41,662 bases of DNA from Schizochytrium sp. TIO01 (taxonomy: Eukaryota; Protista; Bigyra: Labyrinthulomycetes): contig CM015709.1 in assembly GCA_004764695.1 (NCBI GenBank), positions 1 through 41,662 on the forward strand, read 5' to 3'. Position 1 is the stretch's first letter, and each line of letters starts with the position of its first letter. The position numbers and the translations under genes are program-made. Below, in pieces: positions 13,649 to 36,867 of this stretch. The notes under the pieces are model-generated. The model had not been told where the DNA came from. It worked only from the letters and a program-made list of their open reading frames with translations, and ran no database searches.

Positions 13649-13694
13649 AACGAGGAAAAGGACTTGAACCTTTTTAATTAACCGAAACCCCCGT
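13649..13694 (-). ncRNA. tRNA-like minihelix (t-element) between rps4 and rps8
   Basis: ACGGGGG-14 nt-AAAGG TTCAAGT CCTTT-TCCTCGT-T: 7-bp acceptor stem plus canonical T-arm, no D-stem or anticodon arm. Confidence 0.6.
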
Positions 13695-20715: not shown

Positions 20716-20728
20716 AATAAATTCAGTA

Positions 20729-20779
20729 AAGTGGCAAAGGGAATTGAACCCCTATTTATATAATACTACGAGTACCACT
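20729..20779 (-). ncRNA. tRNA-like minihelix (t-element) between rpl16 and nad7
   Basis: AGTGGTA-19 nt-AGGGG TTCAATT CCCTT-TGCCACT-T: complete 7-bp acceptor stem plus T-arm, no anticodon arm. Confidence 0.65.
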
Positions 20780-22796: not shown

Positions 22797-23504
22797 TAAC
22801 ACTTTAAAATTTTTAAAGAAACATATAAGTAGTAGGACAGCTTCAAAAAACATTGAAAGCACAGCGAAGATGATAACCTGAGTAAGTAGATCTGGGGGAG
22901 ATAGAATCCCACCGCAAATACTAAATATAACATAAAAGTAACGCCTATTATAAAACACAAAACTACTACTAAATGACGTAAAACCAAAAAGGATACTCAG
23001 TAGTACAGGGAAAAAGCTAAATATAAAAACCATCCCAAAATGTAGAAGTATAATAAAGCGTATAAAAAAAGAATAATTAAATATGAAATCAATAGAAAAA
23101 AAGCTCGTCGCTATACTAAACTGAATAAAAAAACACCACAACTTAGGCAAGAAATAAGCAAAACAACTGATACCCGCAAAAAAATAAAGGCTCAAAAAAC
23201 AAAGTAGCAAAAAACGAACCAACCGTTGCTCATGAAGGTACAAAGCGGGTATAAAAAAGCAATAAGCTTGAATCAAAAAAACGACGAGTGAAACAAAAAA
23301 ACCAAAGTAAATACTAAAAATGACATCTGTATTAAACAACTCAAAAGGAGATAGAATAATAAACCTATAAGAATCAATGGATATTGTTACGATATACAAA
23401 AGATTGCTTTTTTTAAAAAAGATAACAAAACTGGTTATAATAAAAGACAGGATAACATAAAACAACCTATATACCAAGTCCTGAATAAAAAATTTATAAA
23501 TCAT
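22797..23504 (-). CDS. tatC: twin-arginine translocase subunit TatC (235 aa, TTA stop)
   Basis: Multi-TM protein; LSPFELF, FFIPALYLHE, RRYFY, ILSPPDLLTQ motifs. Confidence 0.9.
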
Positions 23505-25070
23505 CCACAAATAGAATTGAATACAAAATACGTATAATAACGATTACTGTAATAAACCAAGCTAACACAAAGGCTAGCCTTGGCTTTCACACACAAGACA
23601 CCCGTAAGGAATTTCATTTAAATGGCATATAATTAGTTTAGATAGATACTCCTTTAAGGCTATCCAACAACAACCTGTTCGATTAATTTGAAACCATCAT
23701 AACTTTCACCCGTCTCTACTCTAACGAAGTATAAATTCGTAGTATAATTCCAGACATACATATAAAGCTGCGCACGAAACTCCACTCAGCTAGCTGCGCA
23801 TTACTAACCAAGCTTTATTTCACTTTATAATGCATACCTTTCTTTTTACCACTCTTTTAAACTCCCTTTTCATAAATACCAAGATTACTAATTAATTAGA
23901 ATTAACAAAATCAATCTAATAAAGCTGCGTCTTCCAACACATAAACTTTCTCTAAACAAAACCGCATAAAATAACCAAAAAAACTACATCCCAAACAGGA
24001 CTCGATACCGTATGGTACTCTTGTCGCTCACAAAGTGAACAACTCACGTAGATAGATCGCCCTATCCGACATCACAAACAAGTAAAAACAACCCTCATAC
24101 AAGCTGCTCCCCTCCTTTTGCTAGAATTCTCCATATAATAAAAGTTACTCTCCTACAAGCATACCGGTGACTACTACATCACACACTCCTCTCCAACTAC
24201 CATGAACTTCTTGACACCCCAACCTTGCAATCCACTTGCCTAGAAAGAATTAGGACAAGCGTCTCGCTCTAGATATAATATAACTCGCGTACCCTCGCGA
24301 CGACTTTCTCAAACTTTCATTCAATAGGTCTAATCCGCATACGAAAATACTACGAATTGGCTAGCAAAGCAGACTTCGTTTCATCACTTTGCCTCGCACT
24401 TGAATTCCATGCCTCAAACAACACTTCCTCCCATACGAGTATGCCAGCTAAGTTATTTCATTCGATCTCACTGCCTTATTAGGGCAAGTGCACTGACACC
24501 ACTCCGGTTCCCCATTACTAGCAAGGAGATATGATCCTTGCCGCAATTCGATAGCATTGAATAAACTACTACCTCTCTAACTACTGCGCGCATTGGCGTG
24601 GGCCACCCTATCTTCATCTTCGTTAGAAATTTTTTTTTAAATCTTTGCTGGTTTTAGGTCTTGTTAAGCCTTATTATAAAGAGTTTATACACTAGTTCAC
24701 TTGAGAAACGCAATACCAACGCATAAGCTGAGAACCTATGCGGCAATCCTTCCTTTTTTCGCGCTTACCATAATGATACCTTCTCATTCAATTAAATTAC
24801 TTATGGTAAACTTTTTCAGCTAAAAAGGCTATTTTAGAAAAACTAGATACTGAAGCCCAGGGGAAGTCGAACCCCCGCTTATGCATCTGAACCTGTTTGA
24901 ACAGTCCAGTAGCGGTCCCAGCTGTATTCTATTACAAGACACTCTCCTCCGTAGCGGCGTGATCTTGCTCTATGTCGAGAATAGTGGGCGAACCTTCGGC
25001 TTCTGGAATTAATTATATTACTAATTAAGACGAATATTTATTAAAAACGAATAAGAGGCATTTTACTTTG
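23505..25070. promoter_or_regulatory. unique non-coding region upstream of tatC (putative control or promoter region)
   Basis: ~1.5 kb with no ORF in the track; lies 5' of the first gene of the single-strand gene array; function inferred from position only. Confidence 0.35.
24851..25003 (-). ncRNA. structured RNA candidate with tRNA-like ends (tmRNA-like)
   Basis: 5' GAAGCC pairs with 3' GGCTTC; GGGGG-TTCGACT-TCCCC T-arm; internal stems; more GC-rich than its surroundings. Confidence 0.35.
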
Positions 25071-25074
25071 CCTC

Positions 25075-25125
25075 AGGGTAGAACGGGAATCGAACCCGTT
25101 TTATATACATATACCAAAGCTACCC
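25075..25125 (-). ncRNA. tRNA-like minihelix, left boundary copy of the repeat region
   Basis: GGGTAGC-19 nt-ACGGG TTCGATT CCCGT-TCTACCC-T. Confidence 0.6.
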
Positions 25126-25130
25126 ACATT

Positions 25131-28100
25131 AAAACTGGAAGGAGGGGCCAAAGTCCGAAAATCCTCCTTCTATAAGCATGGAGCTAGCCCAAAAACTTCA
25201 AGAACCTCGTGCACGGACCTCCGGTAACAGTAAAACTGGAAGGAGGGGCCAAAGTCCGAAAATCCTCCTTCTATAAGCATGGAGCTAGCCCAAAAACTTC
25301 AAGAACCTCGTGCACGGACCTCCGGTAACAGTAAAACTGGAAGGAGGGGCCAAAGTCCGAAAATCCTCCTTCTATAAGCATGGAGCTAGCCCAAAAACTT
25401 CAAGAACCTCGTGCACGGACCTCCGGTAACAGTAAAACTGGAAGGAGGGGCCAAAGTCCGAAAATCCTCCTTCTATAAGCATGGAGCTAGCCCAAAAACT
25501 TCAAGAACCTCGTGCACGGACCTCCGGTAACAGTAAAACTGGAAGGAGGGGCCAAAGTCCGAAAATCCTCCTTCTATAAGCATGGAGCTAGCCCAAAAAC
25601 TTCAAGAACCTCGTGCACGGACCTCCGGTAACAGTAAAACTGGAAGGAGGGGCCAAAGTCCGAAAATCCTCCTTCTATAAGCATGGAGCTAGCCCAAAAA
25701 CTTCAAGAACCTCGTGCACGGACCTCCGGTAACAGTAAAACTGGAAGGAGGGGCCAAAGTCCGAAAATCCTCCTTCTATAAGCATGGAGCTAGCCCAAAA
25801 ACTTCAAGAACCTCGTGCACGGACCTCCGGTAACAGTAAAACTGGAAGGAGGGGCCAAAGTCCGAAAATCCTCCTTCTATAAGCATGGAGCTAGCCCAAA
25901 AACTTCAAGAACCTCGTGCACGGACCTCCGGTAACAGTAAAACTGGAAGGAGGGGCCAAAGTCCGAAAATCCTCCTTCTATAAGCATGGAGCTAGCCCAA
26001 AAACTTCAAGAACCTCGTGCACGGACCTCCGGTAACAGTAAAACTGGAAGGAGGGGCCAAAGTCCGAAAATCCTCCTTCTATAAGCATGGAGCTAGCCCA
26101 AAAACTTCAAGAACCTCGTGCACGGACCTCCGGTAACAGTAAAACTGGAAGGAGGGGCCAAAGTCCGAAAATCCTCCTTCTATAAGCATGGAGCTAGCCC
26201 AAAAACTTCAAGAACCTCGTGCACGGACCTCCGGTAACAGTAAAACTGGAAGGAGGGGCCAAAGTCCGAAAATCCTCCTTCTATAAGCATGGAGCTAGCC
26301 CAAAAACTTCAAGAACCTCGTGCACGGACCTCCGGTAACAGTAAAACTGGAAGGAGGGGCCAAAGTCCGAAAATCCTCCTTCTATAAGCATGGAGCTAGC
26401 CCAAAAACTTCAAGAACCTCGTGCACGGACCTCCGGTAACAGTAAAACTGGAAGGAGGGGCCAAAGTCCGAAAATCCTCCTTCTATAAGCATGGAGCTAG
26501 CCCAAAAACTTCAAGAACCTCGTGCACGGACCTCCGGTAACAGTAAAACTGGAAGGAGGGGCCAAAGTCCGAAAATCCTCCTTCTATAAGCATGGAGCTA
26601 GCCCAAAAACTTCAAGAACCTCGTGCACGGACCTCCGGTAACAGTAAAACTGGAAGGAGGGGCCAAAGTCCGAAAATCCTCCTTCTATAAGCATGGAGCT
26701 AGCCCAAAAACTTCAAGAACCTCGTGCACGGACCTCCGGTAACAGTAAAACTGGAAGGAGGGGCCAAAGTCCGAAAATCCTCCTTCTATAAGCATGGAGC
26801 TAGCCCAAAAACTTCAAGAACCTCGTGCACGGACCTCCGGTAACAGTAAAACTGGAAGGAGGGGCCAAAGTCCGAAAATCCTCCTTCTATAAGCATGGAG
26901 CTAGCCCAAAAACTTCAAGAACCTCGTGCACGGACCTCCGGTAACAGTAAAACTGGAAGGAGGGGCCAAAGTCCGAAAATCCTCCTTCTATAAGCATGGA
27001 GCTAGCCCAAAAACTTCAAGAACCTCGTGCACGGACCTCCGGTAACAGTAAAACTGGAAGGAGGGGCCAAAGTCCGAAAATCCTCCTTCTATAAGCATGG
27101 AGCTAGCCCAAAAACTTCAAGAACCTCGTGCACGGACCTCCGGTAACAGTAAAACTGGAAGGAGGGGCCAAAGTCCGAAAATCCTCCTTCTATAAGCATG
27201 GAGCTAGCCCAAAAACTTCAAGAACCTCGTGCACGGACCTCCGGTAACAGTAAAACTGGAAGGAGGGGCCAAAGTCCGAAAATCCTCCTTCTATAAGCAT
27301 GGAGCTAGCCCAAAAACTTCAAGAACCTCGTGCACGGACCTCCGGTAACAGTAAAACTGGAAGGAGGGGCCAAAGTCCGAAAATCCTCCTTCTATAAGCA
27401 TGGAGCTAGCCCAAAAACTTCAAGAACCTCGTGCACGGACCTCCGGTAACAGTAAAACTGGAAGGAGGGGCCAAAGTCCGAAAATCCTCCTTCTATAAGC
27501 ATGGAGCTAGCCCAAAAACTTCAAGAACCTCGTGCACGGACCTCCGGTAACAGTAAAACTGGAAGGAGGGGCCAAAGTCCGAAAATCCTCCTTCTATAAG
27601 CATGGAGCTAGCCCAAAAACTTCAAGAACCTCGTGCACGGACCTCCGGTAACAGTAAAACTGGAAGGAGGGGCCAAAGTCCGAAAATCCTCCTTCTATAA
27701 GCATGGAGCTAGCCCAAAAACTTCAAGAACCTCGTGCACGGACCTCCGGTAACAGTAAAACTGGAAGGAGGGGCCAAAGTCCGAAAATCCTCCTTCTATA
27801 AGCATGGAGCTAGCCCAAAAACTTCAAGAACCTCGTGCACGGACCTCCGGTAACAGTAAAACTGGAAGGAGGGGCCAAAGTCCGAAAATCCTCCTTCTAT
27901 AAGCATGGAGCTAGCCCAAAAACTTCAAGAACCTCGTGCACGGACCTCCGGTAACAGTAAAACTGGAAGGAGGGGCCAAAGTCCGAAAATCCTCCTTCTA
28001 TAAGCATGGAGCTAGCCCAAAAACTTCAAGAACCTCGTGCACGGACCTCCGGTAACAGTAAAACTGGAAGGAGGGGCCAAAGTCCGAAAATCCTCCTTCT

Positions 28101-29253
28101 ATAAGCATGGAGCTAGCCCAAAAACTTCAAGAACCTCGTGCACGGACCTCCGGTAACAGTAAAACTGGAAGGAGGGGCCAAAGTCCGAAAATCCTCCTTC
28201 TATAAGCATGGAGCTAGCCCAAAAACTTCAAGAACCTCGTGCACGGACCTCCGGTAACAGTAAAACTGGAAGGAGGGGCCAAAGTCCGAAAATCCTCCTT
28301 CTATAAGCATGGAGCTAGCCCAAAAACTTCAAGAACCTCGTGCACGGACCTCCGGTAACAGTAAAACTGGAAGGAGGGGCCAAAGTCCGAAAATCCTCCT
28401 TCTATAAGCATGGAGCTAGCCCAAAAACTTCAAGAACCTCGTGCACGGACCTCCGGTAACAGTAAAACTGGAAGGAGGGGCCAAAGTCCGAAAATCCTCC
28501 TTCTATAAGCATGGAGCTAGCCCAAAAACTTCAAGAACCTCGTGCACGGACCTCCGGTAACAGTAAAACTGGAAGGAGGGGCCAAAGTCCGAAAATCCTC
28601 CTTCTATAAGCATGGAGCTAGCCCAAAAACTTCAAGAACCTCGTGCACGGACCTCCGGTAACAGTAAAACTGGAAGGAGGGGCCAAAGTCCGAAAATCCT
28701 CCTTCTATAAGCATGGAGCTAGCCCAAAAACTTCAAGAACCTCGTGCACGGACCTCCGGTAACAGTAAAACTGGAAGGAGGGGCCAAAGTCCGAAAATCC
28801 TCCTTCTATAAGCATGGAGCTAGCCCAAAAACTTCAAGAACCTCGTGCACGGACCTCCGGTAACAGTAAAACTGGAAGGAGGGGCCAAAGTCCGAAAATC
28901 CTCCTTCTATAAGCATGGAGCTAGCCCAAAAACTTCAAGAACCTCGTGCACGGACCTCCGGTAACAGTAAAACTGGAAGGAGGGGCCAAAGTCCGAAAAT
29001 CCTCCTTCTATAAGCATGGAGCTAGCCCAAAAACTTCAAGAACCTCGTGCACGGACCTCCGGTAACAGTAAAACTGGAAGGAGGGGCCAAAGTCCGAAAA
29101 TCCTCCTTCTATAAGCATGGAGCTAGCCCAAAAACTTCAAGAACCTCGTGCACGGACCTCCGGTAACAGTAAAACTGGAAGGAGGGGCCAAAGTCCGAAA
29201 ATCCTCCTTCTATAAGCATGGAGCTAGCCCAAAAACTTCAAGAACCTCGTGCA
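25131..29253. repeat. tandem array of a 101-bp unit, 40 full copies plus an 83-bp partial
   Basis: Unit AAAACTGGAAGGAGGGGCCAAAGTCCGAAAATCCTCCTTC...CCGGTAACAGT starts at 25131, 25232 ... 29171. Confidence 0.97.
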
Positions 29254-32200
29254 ACCTAAATTTTATCATTTAAACATATTATTAATCTCTGAATAGGTAT
29301 ATTATTTACATATTCTTCCCCAAACTTCCAAACCCTACTTTCTGTGCGCAACCTCTACACCTCCTCCTCCGTGAACCTGCGTCAGAGGAGGTGTAGAGGA
29401 TAGCTAGAAAGGAGGTACAGTGTCTAAAATGGAAATTAACTCTAGCGTCATCGATATTAACCCCATTTAAACACTTATTCTCTGTAATAGTTAGCTTCTC
29501 ACACTAAGATAGAACAAATAAGAGGCATTTTTACCCTGCCTCAGGGTAGAACAGGAATCGAACCCGTTTTATATACATATACCAAAGCTACCCACATAAA
29601 AATTGGAAGGAGGGGCCAAAGTCCGAAAATCCTCCTTCTATAAGCATGGAGCTAGCTCCAAAACTTCAAGAACCTCGTGCACGGACCTCCTATAACAGTA
29701 AAACTGGAAGGAGGGGCCAAAGTCCGAAAATCCTCCTTCTATAAGCATGGAGCTAGCCCAAAAACTTCAAGAACCTCGTGCACGGACCTCCGGTAACAGT
29801 AAAACTGGAAGGAGGGGCCAAAGTCCGAAAATCCTCCTTCTATAAGCATGGAGCTAGCCCAAAAACTTCAAGAACCTCGTGCACGGACCTCCGGTAACAG
29901 TAAAACTGGAAGGAGGGGCCAAAGTCCGAAAATCCTCCTTCTATAAGCATGGAGCTAACCCAAAAACTTCAAGAACCTCGTGCACGGACCTCCGGTAACA
30001 GTAAAACTGGAAGGAGGGGCCAAAGTCCGAAAATCCTCCTTCTATAAGCATGGAGCTAGCCCAAAAACTTCAAGAACCTCGTGCACGGACCTCCTATAAC
30101 AGTAAAACTGGAAGGAGGGGCCAAAGTCCGAAAATCCTCCTTCTATAAGCATGGAGCTAGCCCAAAAACTTCAAGAACCTCGTGCACGGACCTCCGGTAA
30201 CAGTAAAACTGGAAGGAGGGGCCAAAGTCCGAAAATCCTCCTTCTATAAGCATGGAGCTAGCCCAAAAACTTCAAGAACCTCGTGCAACCTAAATTTTAT
30301 CATTTAAACATATTATTAATCTCTGAATAGGTATATTATTTACATATTCTTCCCCAAACTTCCAAACCCTACTTTCTGTGCGCAACCTCTACACCTCCTC
30401 CTCCGTGAACCTGCGTCAGAGGAGGTGTAGAGGATAGCTAGAAAGGAGGTACAGTGTCTAAAATGGAAATTAACTCTAGCGTCATCGATATTAACCCCAT
30501 TTAAACACTTATTCTCTGTAATAGTTAGCTTCTCACACTAAGATAGAACAAATAAGAGGCATTTTTACCCTGCCTCAGGGTAGAACAGGAATCGAACCCG
30601 TTTTATATACATATACCAAAGCTACCCACATAAAAATTGGAAGGAGGGGCCAAAGTCCGAAAATCCTCCTTCTATAAGCATGGAGCTAGCTCCAAAACTT
30701 CAAGAACCTCGTGCACGGACCTCCTATAACAGTAAAACTGGAAGGAGGGGCCAAAGTCCGAAAATCCTCCTTCTATAAGCATGGAGCTAGCCCAAAAACT
30801 TCAAGAACCTCGTGCACGGACCTCCGGTAACAGTAAAACTGGAAGGAGGGGCCAAAGTCCGAAAATCCTCCTTCTATAAGCATGGAGCTAGCCCAAAAAC
30901 TTCAAGAACCTCGTGCACGGACCTCCGGTAACAGTAAAACTGGAAGGAGGGGCCAAAGTCCGAAAATCCTCCTTCTATAAGCATGGAGCTAGCCCAAAAA
31001 CTTCAAGAACCTCGTGCACGGACCTCCGGTAACAGTAAAACTGGAAGGAGGGGCCAAAGTCCGAAAATCCTCCTTCTATAAGCATGGAGCTAACCCAAAA
31101 ACTTCAAGAACCTCGTGCACGGACCTCCGGTAACAGTAAAACTGGAAGGAGGGGCCAAAGTCCGAAAATCCTCCTTCTATAAGCATGGAGCTAGCCCAAA
31201 AACTTCAAGAACCTCGTGCACGGACCTCCTATAACAGTAAAACTGGAAGGAGGGGCCAAAGTCCGAAAATCCTCCTTCTATAAGCATGGAGCTAGCCCAA
31301 AAACTTCAAGAACCTCGTGCACGGACCTCCGGTAACAGTAAAACTGGAAGGAGGGGCCAAAGTCCGAAAATCCTCCTTCTATAAGCATGGAGCTAGCCCA
31401 AAAACTTCAAGAACCTCGTGCAACCTAAATTTTATCATTTAAACATATTATTAATCTCTGAATAGGTATATTATTTACATATTCTTCCCCAAACTTCCAA
31501 ACCCTACTTTCTGTGCGCAACCTCTACACCTCCTCCTCCGTGAACCTGCGTCAGAGGAGGTGTAGAGGATAGCTAGAAAGGAGGTACAGTGTCTAAAATG
31601 GAAATTAACTCTAGCGTCATCGATATTAACCCCATTTAAACACTTATTCTCTGTAATAGTTAGCTTCTCACACTAAGATAGAACAAATAAGAGGCATTTT
31701 TACCCTGCCTCAGGGTAGAACAGGAATCGAACCCGTTTTATATACATATACCAAAGCTACCCACATAAAAATTGGAAGGAGGGGCCAAAGTCCGAAAATC
31801 CTCCTTCTATAAGCATGGAGCTAGCTCCAAAACTTCAAGAACCTCGTGCACGGACCTCCTATAACAGTAAAACTGGAAGGAGGGGCCAAAGTCCGAAAAT
31901 CCTCCTTCTATAAGCATGGAGCTAGCCCAAAAACTTCAAGAACCTCGTGCACGGACCTCCGGTAACAGTAAAACTGGAAGGAGGGGCCAAAGTCCGAAAA
32001 TCCTCCTTCTATAAGCATGGAGCTAGCCCAAAAACTTCAAGAACCTCGTGCACGGACCTCCGGTAACAGTAAAACTGGAAGGAGGGGCCAAAGTCCGAAA
32101 ATCCTCCTTCTATAAGCATGGAGCTAGCCCAAAAACTTCAAGAACCTCGTGCAACCTAAATTTTATCATTTAAACATATTATTAATCTCTGAATAGGTAT

Positions 32201-35200
32201 ATTATTTACATATTCTTCCCCAAACTTCCAAACCCTACTTTCTGTGCGCAACCTCTACACCTCCTCCTCCGTGAACCTGCGTCAGAGGAGGTGTAGAGGA
32301 TAGCTAGAAAGGAGGTACAGTGTCTAAAATGGAAATTAACTCTAGCGTCATCGATATTAACCCCATTTAAACACTTATTCTCTGTAATAGTTAGCTTCTC
32401 ACACTAAGATAGAACAAATAAGAGGCATTTTTACCCTGCCTCAGGGTAGAACAGGAATCGAACCCGTTTTATATACATATACCAAAGCTACCCACATAAA
32501 AATTGGAAGGAGGGGCCAAAGTCCGAAAATCCTCCTTCTATAAGCATGGAGCTAGCTCCAAAACTTCAAGAACCTCGTGCACGGACCTCCTATAACAGTA
32601 AAACTGGAAGGAGGGGCCAAAGTCCGAAAATCCTCCTTCTATAAGCATGGAGCTAGCCCAAAAACTTCAAGAACCTCGTGCACGGACCTCCGGTAACAGT
32701 AAAACTGGAAGGAGGGGCCAAAGTCCGAAAATCCTCCTTCTATAAGCATGGAGCTAGCCCAAAAACTTCAAGAACCTCGTGCACGGACCTCCGGTAACAG
32801 TAAAACTGGAAGGAGGGGCCAAAGTCCGAAAATCCTCCTTCTATAAGCATGGAGCTAGCCCAAAAACTTCAAGAACCTCGTGCACGGACCTCCGGTAACA
32901 GTAAAACTGGAAGGAGGGGCCAAAGTCCGAAAATCCTCCTTCTATAAGCATGGAGCTAGCCCAAAAACTTCAAGAACCTCGTGCACGGACCTCCGGTAAC
33001 AGTAAAACTGGAAGGAGGGGCCAAAGTCCGAAAATCCTCCTTCTATAAGCATGGAGCTAGCCCAAAAACTTCAAGAACCTCGTGCAACCTAAATTTTATC
33101 ATTTAAACATATTATTAATCTCTGAATAGGTATATTATTTACATATTCTTCCCCAAACTTCCAAACCCTACTTTCTGTGCGCAACCTCTACACCTCCTCC
33201 TCCGTGAACCTGCGTCAGAGGAGGTGTAGAGGATAGCTAGAAAGGAGGTACAGTGTCTAAAATGGAAATTAACTCTAGCGTCATCGATATTAACCCCATT
33301 TAAACACTTATTCTCTGTAATAGTTAGCTTCTCACACTAAGATAGAACAAATAAGAGGCATTTTTACCCTGCCTCAGGGTAGAACAGGAATCGAACCCGT
33401 TTTATATACATATACCAAAGCTACCCACATAAAAATTGGAAGGAGGGGCCAAAGTCCGAAAATCCTCCTTCTATAAGCATGGAGCTAGCTCCAAAACTTC
33501 AAGAACCTCGTGCACGGACCTCCTATAACAGTAAAACTGGAAGGAGGGGCCAAAGTCCGAAAATCCTCCTTCTATAAGCATGGAGCTAGCCCAAAAACTT
33601 CAAGAACCTCGTGCACGGACCTCCGGTAACAGTAAAACTGGAAGGAGGGGCCAAAGTCCGAAAATCCTCCTTCTATAAGCATGGAGCTAGCCCAAAAACT
33701 TCAAGAACCTCGTGCACGGACCTCCGGTAACAGTAAAACTGGAAGGAGGGGCCAAAGTCCGAAAATCCTCCTTCTATAAGCATGGAGCTAACCCAAAAAC
33801 TTCAAGAACCTCGTGCACGGACCTCCGGTAACAGTAAAACTGGAAGGAGGGGCCAAAGTCCGAAAATCCTCCTTTTATAAGCATGGAGCTAGCCCAAAAA
33901 CTTCAAGAACCTCGTGCAACCTAAATTTTATCATTTAAACATATTATTAATCTCTGAATAGGTATATTATTTACATATTCTTCCCCAAACTTCCAAACCC
34001 TACTTTCTGTGCGCAACCTCTACACCTCCTCCTCCGTGAACCTGCGTCAGAGGAGGTGTAGAGGATAGCTAGAAAGGAGGTACAGTGTCTAAAATGGAAA
34101 TTAACTCTAGCGTCATCGATATTAACCCCATTTAAACACTTATTCTCTGTAATAGTTAGCTTCTCACACTAAGATAGAACAAATAAGAGGCATTTTTACC
34201 CTGCCTCAGGGTAGAACAGGAATCGAACCCGTTTTATATACATATACCAAAGCTACCCACATAAAAATTGGAAGGAGGGGCCAAAGTCCGAAAATCCTCC
34301 TTCTATAAGCATGGAGCTAGCTCCAAAACTTCAAGAACCTCGTGCACGGACCTCCTATAACAGTAAAACTGGAAGGAGGGGCCAAAGTCCGAAAATCCTC
34401 CTTCTATAAGCATGGAGCTAGCCCAAAAACTTCAAGAACCTCGTGCACGGACCTCCGGTAACAGTAAAACTGGAAGGAGGGGCCAAAGTCCGAAAATCCT
34501 CCTTCTATAAGCATGGAGCTAGCCCAAAAACTTCAAGAACCTCGTGCACGGACCTCCGGTAACAGTAAAACTGGAAGGAGGGGCCAAAGTCCGAAAATCC
34601 TCCTTCTATAAGCATGGAGCTAGCCCAAAAACTTCAAGAACCTCGTGCACGGACCTCCGGTAACAGTAAAACTGGAAGGAGGGGCCAAAGTCCGAAAATC
34701 CTCCTTCTATAAGCATGGAGCTAGCCCAAAAACTTCAAGAACCTCGTGCACGGACCTCCGGTAACAGTAAAACTGGAAGGAGGGGCCAAAGTCCGAAAAT
34801 CCTCCTTCTATAAGCATGGAGCTAGCCCAAAAACTTCAAGAACCTCGTGCAACCTAAATTTTATCATTTAAACATATTATTAATCTCTGAATAGGTATAT
34901 TATTTACATATTCTTCCCCAAACTTCCAAACCCTACTTTCTGTGCGCAACCTCTACACCTCCTCCTCCGTGAACCTGCGTCAGAGGAGGTGTAGAGGATA
35001 GCTAGAAAGGAGGTACAGTGTCTAAAATGGAAATTAACTCTAGCGTCATCGATATTAACCCCATTTAAACACTTATTCTCTGTAATAGTTAGCTTCTCAC
35101 ACTAAGATAGAACAAATAAGAGGCATTTTTACCCTGCCTCAGGGTAGAACAGGAATCGAACCCGTTTTATATACATATACCAAAGCTACCCACATAAAAA

Positions 35201-36153
35201 TTGGAAGGAGGGGCCAAAGTCCGAAAATCCTCCTTCTATAAGCATGGAGCTAGCTCCAAAACTTCAAGAACCTCGTGCACGGACCTCCTATAACAGTAAA
35301 ACTGGAAGGAGGGGCCAAAGTCCGAAAATCCTCCTTCTATAAGCATGGAGCTAGCCCAAAAACTTCAAGAACCTCGTGCACGGACCTCCGGTAACAGTAA
35401 AACTGGAAGGAGGGGCCAAAGTCCGAAAATCCTCCTTCTATAAGCATGGAGCTAGCCCAAAAACTTCAAGAACCTCGTGCACGGACCTCCGGTAACAGTA
35501 AAACTGGAAGGAGGGGCCAAAGTCCGAAAATCCTCCTTCTATAAGCATGGAGCTAGCCCAAAAACTTCAAGAACCTCGTGCAACCTAAATTTTATCATTT
35601 AAACATATTATTAATCTCTGAATAGGTATATTATTTACATATTCTTCCCCAAACTTCCAAACCCTACTTTCTGTGCGCAACCTCTACACCTCCTCCTCCG
35701 TGAACCTGCGTCAGAGGAGGTGTAGAGGATAGCTAGAAAGGAGGTACAGTGTCTAAAATGGAAATTAACTCTAGCGTCATCGATATTAACCCCATTTAAA
35801 CACTTATTCTCTGTAATAGTTAGCTTCTCACACTAAGATAGAACAAATAAGAGGCATTTTTACCCTGCCTCAGGGTAGAACAGGAATCGAACCCGTTTTA
35901 TATACATATACCAAAGCTACCCACATAAAAATTGAAAGGAGGGGCCAAAGTTCGAAAATCCTCCTTCTATAAGCATGGAGCTAGCTCCAAAACTTCAAGA
36001 ACCTCGTGCAACCTAAATTTTATCATTTAAACACTTATTCTCTGTAATAGTTAGCTTCTCACACTAAGATAGAACAAATAAGAGGCATTTTTACCCTGCC
36101 TCAGGGTAGAATGGGAATTGAACCCATTTTATATACTTATACCAAAGCTACCC
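29254..36153. repeat. higher-order repeat: eight 345-bp spacers alternating with short 101-bp arrays, ending in an internally deleted ninth spacer
   Basis: Spacers start at 29254, 30288, 31423, 32154, 33087, 33919, 34852, 35583; following arrays hold 6.8, 7.8, 3.8, 5.8, 4.8, 5.8, 3.8 and 0.8 units. Confidence 0.96.
36103..36153 (-). ncRNA. tRNA-like minihelix, right boundary copy of the repeat region
   Basis: GGGTAGC-19 nt-ATGGG TTCAATT CCCAT-TCTACCC-T; compensatory T-stem change relative to the other copies. Confidence 0.6.
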
Positions 36154-36201
36154 AAAACTTTTATAAAAAGTTTAAGCTATTTTAGCTTTAAAATAACTTT
36201 T

Positions 36202-36382: not shown

Positions 36383-36766
36383 TAAAACTCGTTTTATCAA
36401 TTGCAATTGAATAAAAGAATTTACCAAATTATTCAAATAATTAGGAGTAAATTTAAATTGAGATGAAACTTGTTTTGAAGATTTCAAAGCCCAAGAAGCT
36501 ACGTTAGAATACGATTTTTGAACTAGTTTGTAGCAAGAACCACAAGATTCACTGAAAAAAGTATCATATTTAGCTGAAACGGAACTAACTTCTTTTTGAA
36601 GTTCTGAAGATGATAGTTGAATAGAAGAAAAGCGTTTTACCCTCATTTTAAGAGCATTCACAATTAGGGGAACAACTGTTTGAAAAGTAATAAAATAAAA
36701 CAACCAAAAAAACAGAAGAAGCCAAAAAATTTGAGAAAGAAAAGTAGTAATATCTAGTTGAGGCAT
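36383..36766 (-). CDS. atp8: ATP synthase subunit 8 (127 aa, TTA stop)
   Basis: MPQLD N-terminus, SQIFWL TM segment, LKMR; TTA removes the overlap with trnY. Confidence 0.93.
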
Positions 36767-36778
36767 TAGAATAAAATT

Positions 36779-36850
36779 TGGGTGCAAAGGGAATTGAACC
36801 CCCGACAAAAGACTTAAAAGGACTCTGCTCTACCACTGAGCTATGCACCC
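36779..36850 (-). tRNA. trnK: tRNA-Lys(UUU)
   Basis: Anticodon loop CTTTTAA. Confidence 0.92.
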
Positions 36851-36867
36851 AATCCTTGTTAATTTTA

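Follow-up and report, generated by a model that had tools for sequence, protein, structure and literature searches.

Why does a mitochondrial repeat region carry ten copies of what resembles a transfer RNA (tRNA) stripped of its D and anticodon arms? The question is raised by a 41,662-base stretch of DNA from Schizochytrium sp. TIO01 (contig CM015709.1, positions 1 to 41,662; hereafter the window), in which an element of 51 nucleotides (nt) recurs on the minus strand of the repeat region (Table 1). A preliminary description of the same letters had read covariation in these elements as pointing to selection on RNA structure, so that the region may be transcribed and divided into defined RNAs, possibly as a non-coding RNA or replication-primer system. 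Our best reading is that they are tRNA-derived cleavage signals of the type called t-elements in plant mitochondria, here in a thraustochytrid mitochondrial genome, and not a new RNA system. Specifically, we favor, with a probability of roughly 0.6, a trnK-like t-element that was amplified as part of a higher-order repeat. The minihelix class is predicted to serve, probably, as RNase P/RNase Z punctuation at two coding junctions, and the copies at the two array boundaries, designated L and R, are plausibly functional by the same prediction; the internal copies are passengers. The observations behind this reading are the structure of the elements, the architecture of their copies, the strand bias, the similarity to a tRNA, the age of the surrounding module, and the scarcity of array sequence in RNA libraries.

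Structure of the 51-nt elements

A pattern search of the window returned exactly 10 matches where none would be expected by chance, and all lie on the minus strand (25076-25125, 29544-29593, 30578-30627, 31713-31762, 32444-32493, 33377-33426, 34209-34258, 35142-35191, 35873-35922, and 36104-36153). Adding the discriminator T extends each match to a 51-nt element that starts one position lower (25075 and so on), in agreement with all ten elements initially described (10/10). The pattern was absent from the viral and prokaryote genome collections that were scanned with it.

When each of the three sequence variants (copy L, internal, copy R) was folded alone, the minimum-energy fold was a 6-bp acceptor stem stacked on the T-arm. 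The resulting coaxial helix spans 12 bp, with a C.U mismatch at pair 7-66 in all three variants, and the 19-nt AT-rich linker is unpaired. Both the acceptor/T-arm minihelix and its three T-stem versions had been put forward in the preliminary description, and both were borne out: the stem is ACGGG/CCCGT in L, ACGGG/CCTGT with a G.U pair in the internal copies, and ATGGG/CCCAT in R. The T loop is TTCGATT or TTCAATT, the latter in R. Copies L and R keep the minihelix fold when their flanks are included. Outside the canonical tRNA genes, the GGTTCRANYCC motif occurs as GGTTCGATTCC in copy L and the internal copies and as GGTTCAATTCC in copy R. The linker contains TATAAGTA in copy R (36126-36141) and TATATGTA in the remaining copies; its motif TATAWGTATATA is found nowhere in the window outside the ten elements and precedes no other gene.

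ARAGORN called none of the elements a tRNA, and they have neither a cloverleaf nor an anticodon arm. With the Rfam tRNA model (RF00005), copy R scored 15.5 bits against a cut-off of 29 and copy L gave no match, and no Rfam family was recovered for the element at a permissive E-value. Likewise, no transfer-messenger RNA (tmRNA) was called by ARAGORN or matched in Rfam at E up to 5.

Probable parentage and repeat architecture

The most similar gene in the neighborhood is trnK, found close by on the upstream side (order trnK-trnY-trnC-array). In its 3' part, copy R agrees with trnK at 19/22 positions, the T loop is TTCAATT in both, and the acceptor ends GGGT...ACCC are common to trnK and the element; the 5' part of the element gave no convincing alignment to trnK.

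Every internal copy belongs to a 341-nt module, and the eight modules show 100% identity to one another. Each module consists of the t-element, a GAGGCA...TGCCTC hairpin, and a 290-nt spacer containing a 15-bp hairpin, for which Rfam at a permissive E-value gave only chance microRNA-like matches. After each module follow 4-41 copies of a 101-nt unit, which occurs 82 times in the whole region. The higher-order units are 731-1135 nt long, with a last one of 4468 nt, and their lengths differ by multiples of 101. The array starts with copy R and ends with copy L and its hairpin, which is the usual signature of a tandem duplication ending in a partial unit. Because the modules are identical, the eight internal copies are not independent, leaving only R, internal, and L as independent variants (n = 3). 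The ten copies are paralogues that arose by array amplification and homogenization, not ten independently maintained sites. Neither strand of the repeat region contains an open reading frame (ORF) of at least 80 aa.

Minihelices at gene junctions

The window is a mitochondrial genome with rnl, rns, and 21 tRNA genes, together with nad, rpl, rps, and tatC genes, and every gene is on the minus strand. TTA is listed among the stop codons of a related Schizochytrium mitogenome (PMC7799850). When TTA is taken as a stop, the gene overlaps in the window vanish and the intergenic spacers, apart from the repeat region and its flank, are mostly 27 nt or shorter.

We scanned this genome for T-arms that have an acceptor strand immediately behind them and a pairing partner for that strand upstream. 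The minus strand yielded the 21 tRNAs, the ten copies, and 3 further sites, and the plus strand of the window yielded no match. As background, 1.44 Mb of other protist mitochondrial contigs contained 5 such minihelices, equivalent to 0.14 per 41.7-kb strand, and shuffled sequences gave 0.3; the comparison set comprised 80 contigs from a metagenome scan with Nad7, at no more than 75% identity and with other gene orders, and held no thraustochytrid relative. Of the 3 further sites, two (20729-20779 and 13649-13694) are armless like the repeat elements. Outside the repeat region, and with TTA as stop, only two spacers between protein genes exceed 30 nt, and each is mostly filled by one of these minihelices. 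Two independent minihelices at junctions that lack a tRNA make a processing role plausible; the GGTTCRANYCC motif and the placement on the gene strand uphold the assignment to the t-element type made at the outset.

Two of the metagenome protist mitochondrial contigs, L066 (1481-1527) and L071 (12499-12547), also contain armless minihelices of the same build. The one on L066 has a fold z-score of -3.2; the nad7 stop precedes it by 3 nt, and the next ORF follows after 15 nt. As gene punctuation, armless t-elements may have a wider distribution among protists.

Representation in sequencing runs

All runs were analyzed as contigs, in which RNA ends and strand are invisible, and such standard libraries would miss RNAs of ~51 nt. 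Run X18 behaves as DNA of a ~97% relative, with a flat depth of ~950 over single-copy genes; its summed depth in the array bin is ~355,000, some 300-fold over-representation. Depth is uneven, as in RNA, in runs X1, X5 (an oligo-dT RNA library), and X9. In these three, the depth of the 101-nt unit was 54.5, 4.9, and 11.7, compared with 22.6, 2.3-5.7, and 1.6-5 for the unique region beside the array. With 82 DNA copies, the per-copy depth of the array is therefore 1-9% of its flank, or 10-100x under-represented. In X1, the module had a depth of 4.48 for 8 copies, so the per-copy depth was 0.56-0.66 for module and 101-nt unit alike. Such values imply either that the array is untranscribed, its signal being DNA carry-over, or that array RNA is short-lived.

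At the left boundary, depth in the RNA-type runs rises at least 35-fold just downstream of copy L. The junction between unique sequence, copy L, and the first 101-nt unit is found at the same place in X18, which differs there over 236 nt by 12 substitutions and a 17-nt deletion. Contig ends were also recorded at the minihelix between rpl16 and nad7. In X5, the contig of nad7 stops at 20723, which is 6 nt past the minihelix at 20729-20779, and the rpl16 contig starts at 20818; X9 has a similar gap, and one contig of X1 spans it.

Nuclear copies and the age of the module

When the whole assembly was searched with the pattern, the element turned up in eight further places, giving at least eight nuclear copies. 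Each lies in a decaying stretch of ~272 nt with ~89% identity to the mitochondrial module. The stretch begins inside a 101-nt unit, takes in the t-element and its hairpin, and ends within the spacer-hairpin loop. These stretches are embedded in a dispersed nuclear repeat of more than 6 kb (38% GC) with a 5S rRNA gene and tRNA genes, whose copies are 74-96% identical, segment by segment, and lie mostly near contig ends. By sequence, the nuclear copies read as a nuclear mitochondrial DNA segment (NUMT) that would have been fixed in a repeat flanking ribosomal DNA and spread with it. Since the breakpoints bear no relation to the mitochondrial structure, it is simpler to assume that the sequence moved from mitochondrion to nucleus. 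The reverse, a nuclear origin of the module, was considered and set aside as less parsimonious, given that the nuclear fragment begins inside the 101-nt unit and stops in the spacer-hairpin loop.

The nuclear junction sequence also occurs in X18, at nuclear-like depth. A junction common to X18 indicates that the module was joined to the 101-nt unit before the two strains split, and the module arrangement is, by this comparison, old. The commonest nuclear form has the L-type T stem, ACGGG/CCCGT, and differs from copy L at 2 linker positions, 1 T-loop position, and 0/24 helix positions. The unchanged 24 helix positions are suggestive, with numbers too small to test.

Proposed processing and comparison with known systems

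Cleavage of the elements, and any benefit from it, we infer from these features. A tRNA gene remnant, most like trnK, would have lost its D and anticodon arms and kept the 12-bp acceptor/T-arm helix and canonical T loop. One ancestral copy with its hairpin, just downstream of trnK-trnY-trnC, would then have been swept into the higher-order tandem repeat. On a transcript of the gene-carrying strand, RNase P would be expected to cleave 5' of G1, and RNase Z 3' of the discriminator U. Copy R would split the tRNA cluster from the array, copy L would split the array from a 1.5-kb leader upstream of tatC, and whatever array RNA arose by read-through would be chopped into short-lived fragments.

A domain of protein-only RNase P (PRORP) is encoded in the nuclear genome at C31:5112035-5112700, within a 799-aa open frame (80.9 bits against a cut-off of 39.1). 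From its sequence, this gene could encode the enzyme proposed to act on the t-elements.

Plant mitochondrial t-elements (Hanic-Joyce 1990) provide the closest parallel. Like them, the present elements are probably tRNA-derived, consist of an acceptor stem and a T-arm with GGTTCRANYCC, and have no encoded CCA; they also occupy the sense strand, at or close to what would be transcript boundaries, with some copies in repeated DNA. Plant t-elements were found through the GGTTCRANYCC motif (PMC1920247, Forner et al. 2007). RNase Z faces the acceptor helix and the T helix stacked on it, and plant t-elements are cut by PRORP1 and RNase Z-L (PMC3790967); their RNAs are CCA-tailed and not aminoacylated (PMC11658184, Ceriotti et al. 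2024). Plant t-elements are thus cut by RNase P (PRORP) and RNase Z, and the same enzymes are proposed here by analogy. Whereas plant t-elements mostly keep a non-canonical cloverleaf, a 14-19-nt AT-rich linker replaces the D and anticodon arms in the elements described here. The host is also different, a labyrinthulomycete (stramenopile), and so is the arrangement of ten copies in a tandem array with a fixed hairpin after each. The papers searched describe t-elements for plants and green algae, and none for labyrinthulomycetes or other stramenopiles.

A second parallel is the tRNA punctuation of mitochondrial polycistronic transcripts (Ojala et al. 1981, as cited in PMC3790967). The genes of the window likewise lie on one strand, are tightly packed, and are in many cases separated by tRNAs or tRNA-like structures. 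Unlike in tRNA punctuation, the elements are not functional tRNAs and most copies are in non-coding DNA. In animal mitochondrial genomes, tRNA pseudogenes also occur in duplicated control-region repeats, through tandem duplication and random loss. As there, a tRNA remnant has been copied with a non-coding repeat unit and its copies homogenized; unlike there, the remnant keeps exactly the part that the enzymes recognize, and elements of the same build stand at two coding junctions. Finally, there are the armless mitochondrial tRNAs of enoplean nematodes and mites, in which the D and/or T arms are lost and the anticodon arm is retained. The elements share with them a short length (42-55 nt) and missing arms, and differ in keeping the T arm and lacking the anticodon arm.

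If the minihelices are cut, this compact genome would punctuate with degenerate tRNAs where a real tRNA is missing, as plant mitochondria do. The punctuation principle would thereby extend to a distant lineage, with precise predictions for transcript ends. The amplified copies would also illustrate how a tandem repeat can carry a processing signal along, and in annotation the elements are better marked as tRNA-like than as tRNA genes.

Weighing the alternatives

Several results weigh against a t-element that is cut. Fold z-scores relative to shuffles are modest (-1.4 to -2.0), and an internal copy folded with its flanks prefers an alternative in which the acceptor stem is broken. One contig of X1 is continuous from 23188 to 25159 through copy L, so cleavage there is incomplete or the run contains DNA. 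An array signal that tracks DNA copy number fits DNA carry-over without array transcription. Covariation, from which the preliminary description had argued for selection, is not significant and does not carry that argument. Among the three independent variants, the only double change is that of copy R (C-G to U-A), and the internal CCTGT shows one C-to-T transition giving G.U. In an alignment of these variants with the eight nuclear copies, one pair was changed on both sides, which 207/500 shuffles matched. C-to-T transitions like that of the internal variant also arose in the nuclear copies, which carry in addition G-to-A changes that break acceptor-stem pairs. Moreover, the ATGGG/CCCAT of copy R is the T stem of the neighboring trnC, making gene conversion a possible source.

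These points lend themselves to an alternative that we consider unlikely, namely that the elements are inert passengers: a decayed tRNA pseudogene in a tandem duplication, in an untranscribed array, with no copy cut or selected. Transcription would then stop after trnC and restart near the left boundary. Besides the lack of significant covariation, the array depth of 1-9% of flank, and the other fold of the internal copy, such passengers would account for eight internal copies identical through amplification and for the terminator-like hairpin and T-run behind each copy. They would not lead one to expect that 24/24 helix positions are equal in copy L and the commonest nuclear form despite ~11% module divergence, nor that minihelices of the same build are kept at two very tight gene junctions. 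In addition, with all genes on one strand, read-through of the array is hard to avoid.

It is improbable that the array is instead an RNA factory, in which a long transcript is cut into stable 101-nt multimers or 51-nt RNAs that act as non-coding RNA or replication primers. The k-mers of the 101-nt unit and module do occur in RNA-type libraries, and plant t-element RNAs are CCA-tailed and detectable (PMC11658184). Per copy, however, the array is 10-100x under-represented in the three RNA-type runs, as opposed to ~300-fold over-represented in the DNA run of the relative, and abundant unit-length or 101-nt multimer RNAs, including the defined array RNAs initially proposed, are not supported. There is also no conserved Rfam family, no significant covariation, and no link to replication in any result, so nothing was found for the proposed replication-primer system. 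We give equally little credence to a version in which the module of t-element and hairpin is itself selected, and the array diced to CCA-tailed 51-nt and unit-length RNAs for replication, array maintenance, or as decoys for tRNA enzymes. Were it true, the tandem array would be a dosage amplifier for a small RNA.

A promoter function is more doubtful again. Here the AT-rich linker (TATAAGTA in R, TATATGTA elsewhere) would be a promoter for the phage-type mitochondrial RNA polymerase, and the module would be a transcription start unit instead of a cleavage site. The depth jump of at least 35-fold just downstream of copy L is in its favor, as is the copy R linker, which shares 8/9 bases with the yeast mitochondrial promoter, ATATAAGTA. 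Yet the motif is restricted to the ten elements and precedes no other gene, and the internal copies share the linker of L while array RNA is scarce. Because TATAWGTATATA lies only inside the elements, it is uninformative on promoters. A sigma-70 promoter scan, of a type not applicable to mitochondria, did no better than shuffles.

Armless mitochondrial tRNAs exist in nematodes and mites, and ARAGORN found no trnR, trnT, or trnL(UAA) in the window, so that import of the three would be required; that the element is a true armless tRNA for Arg, Thr, or Leu-UAA is nevertheless rejected as next to impossible for want of an anticodon arm, since the 19-nt linker offers no anticodon stem in any register and is unpaired in the fold, neither ARAGORN nor Rfam makes a tRNA call, and the remaining 21 tRNAs are canonical cloverleaves.

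Coordinates of the features

Table 1. Elements, repeat components, and related features (window positions; nuclear copies as contig:position).
Feature	Position	Strand	Remarks
Whole mitochondrial repeat region	25075..36153	minus	t-element copy at either end
t-element copy R	36103..36153	minus	most upstream in gene direction, 48 nt after trnC; T stem ATGGG/CCCAT
Hairpin GAGGCA-(9 nt)-TGCCTC	36082..36102	minus	directly after copy R; then TTATTTGTT
t-element internal copy 1 of 8	35872..35922	minus	T stem ACGGG/CCTGT
t-element internal copy 2	35141..35191	minus	pattern match
t-element internal copy 3	34208..34258	minus	pattern match
t-element internal copy 4	33376..33426	minus	pattern match
t-element internal copy 5	32443..32493	minus	pattern match
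t-element internal copy 6	31712..31762	minus	pattern match
t-element internal copy 7	30577..30627	minus	pattern match
t-element internal copy 8	29543..29593	minus	pattern match
t-element copy L	25075..25125	minus	most downstream; T stem ACGGG/CCCGT
Hairpin GAGGCA-(8 nt)-TGCCTC	25055..25074	minus	after copy L; then TTATTCGTTT; terminator-like in simple scan
Eight higher-order units, 731-1135 nt	29253..35922	minus	341-nt module + 4-8 copies of 101-nt unit
341-nt module, example	29253..29593	minus	21-nt hairpin 29522-29542; 15-bp spacer hairpin 29352-29399
41-copy block of 101-nt unit	25126..29252	minus	99% identity
trnK, likeliest parent of element	36778..36851	minus	3' match to copy R, T loop, acceptor ends
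Independent 51-nt minihelix	20729..20779	minus	rpl16-nad7 junction; 7-bp acceptor stem; 19 nt common with trnK
Independent 46-nt minihelix	13649..13694	minus	rps4-rps8 junction
Nuclear copies	C5:21830, C7:1059709, C8:60961, C8:185665, C23:45045, C31:11973, C34:2944891, C18:44635

The surrounding mitochondrial genome

The 21 tRNAs of the window are canonical cloverleaves. The TatC of the window is 98% identical to that of Aurantiochytrium acetophilum, the single relative returned by the homologue search, and we read the window as mitochondrial DNA from an Aurantiochytrium. GC content is ~33% elsewhere in the window and reaches 42-50% at 24000-36200, that is, in the repeat region and its left flank.

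The Illumina mitogenome of Schizochytrium sp. TIO1101 comprises 31,494 bp with the same set of 21 tRNAs, and no repeat region is listed for it (PMC7799850). It is ~10.2 kb shorter than the window, approximately the size of the array; given this match, short-read mitogenome assemblies of the group may have collapsed ~10 kb of array. Within the TIO01 assembly, contig C15 (71,748 bases) holds ~1.7 copies of this mitochondrial genome, mostly 100% identical, with an array-spanning part that is 97.7% identical to the window and 4,216 masked bases. Such a contig might represent a concatemer, an artefact of circular mapping, or heteroplasmy in array length.

The 1.5-kb interval from copy L to tatC (23511-25054) contains no ORF, has 43% GC, and matched no Rfam family at a permissive E-value. 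In the RNA-type runs its depth equals that of tatC/rpl2, and in X18 it is ~5x more diverged than the genes, with 1-nt indels. This segment may be a long leader or an unknown RNA. Within it, a tmRNA-like candidate at 24851-25003 has a 3' part (24851-24924) that includes a T-arm; in X18, 75 letters too dissimilar to align stand in place of that part. The candidate has a fold z-score of -0.10 and received no tmRNA call from ARAGORN or Rfam, and the evidence points against a conserved structured RNA at this site. On the other side of the array, with TTA as stop, an ATG-started ORF of 127 aa lies at 36383-36766 between trnK and trnY.

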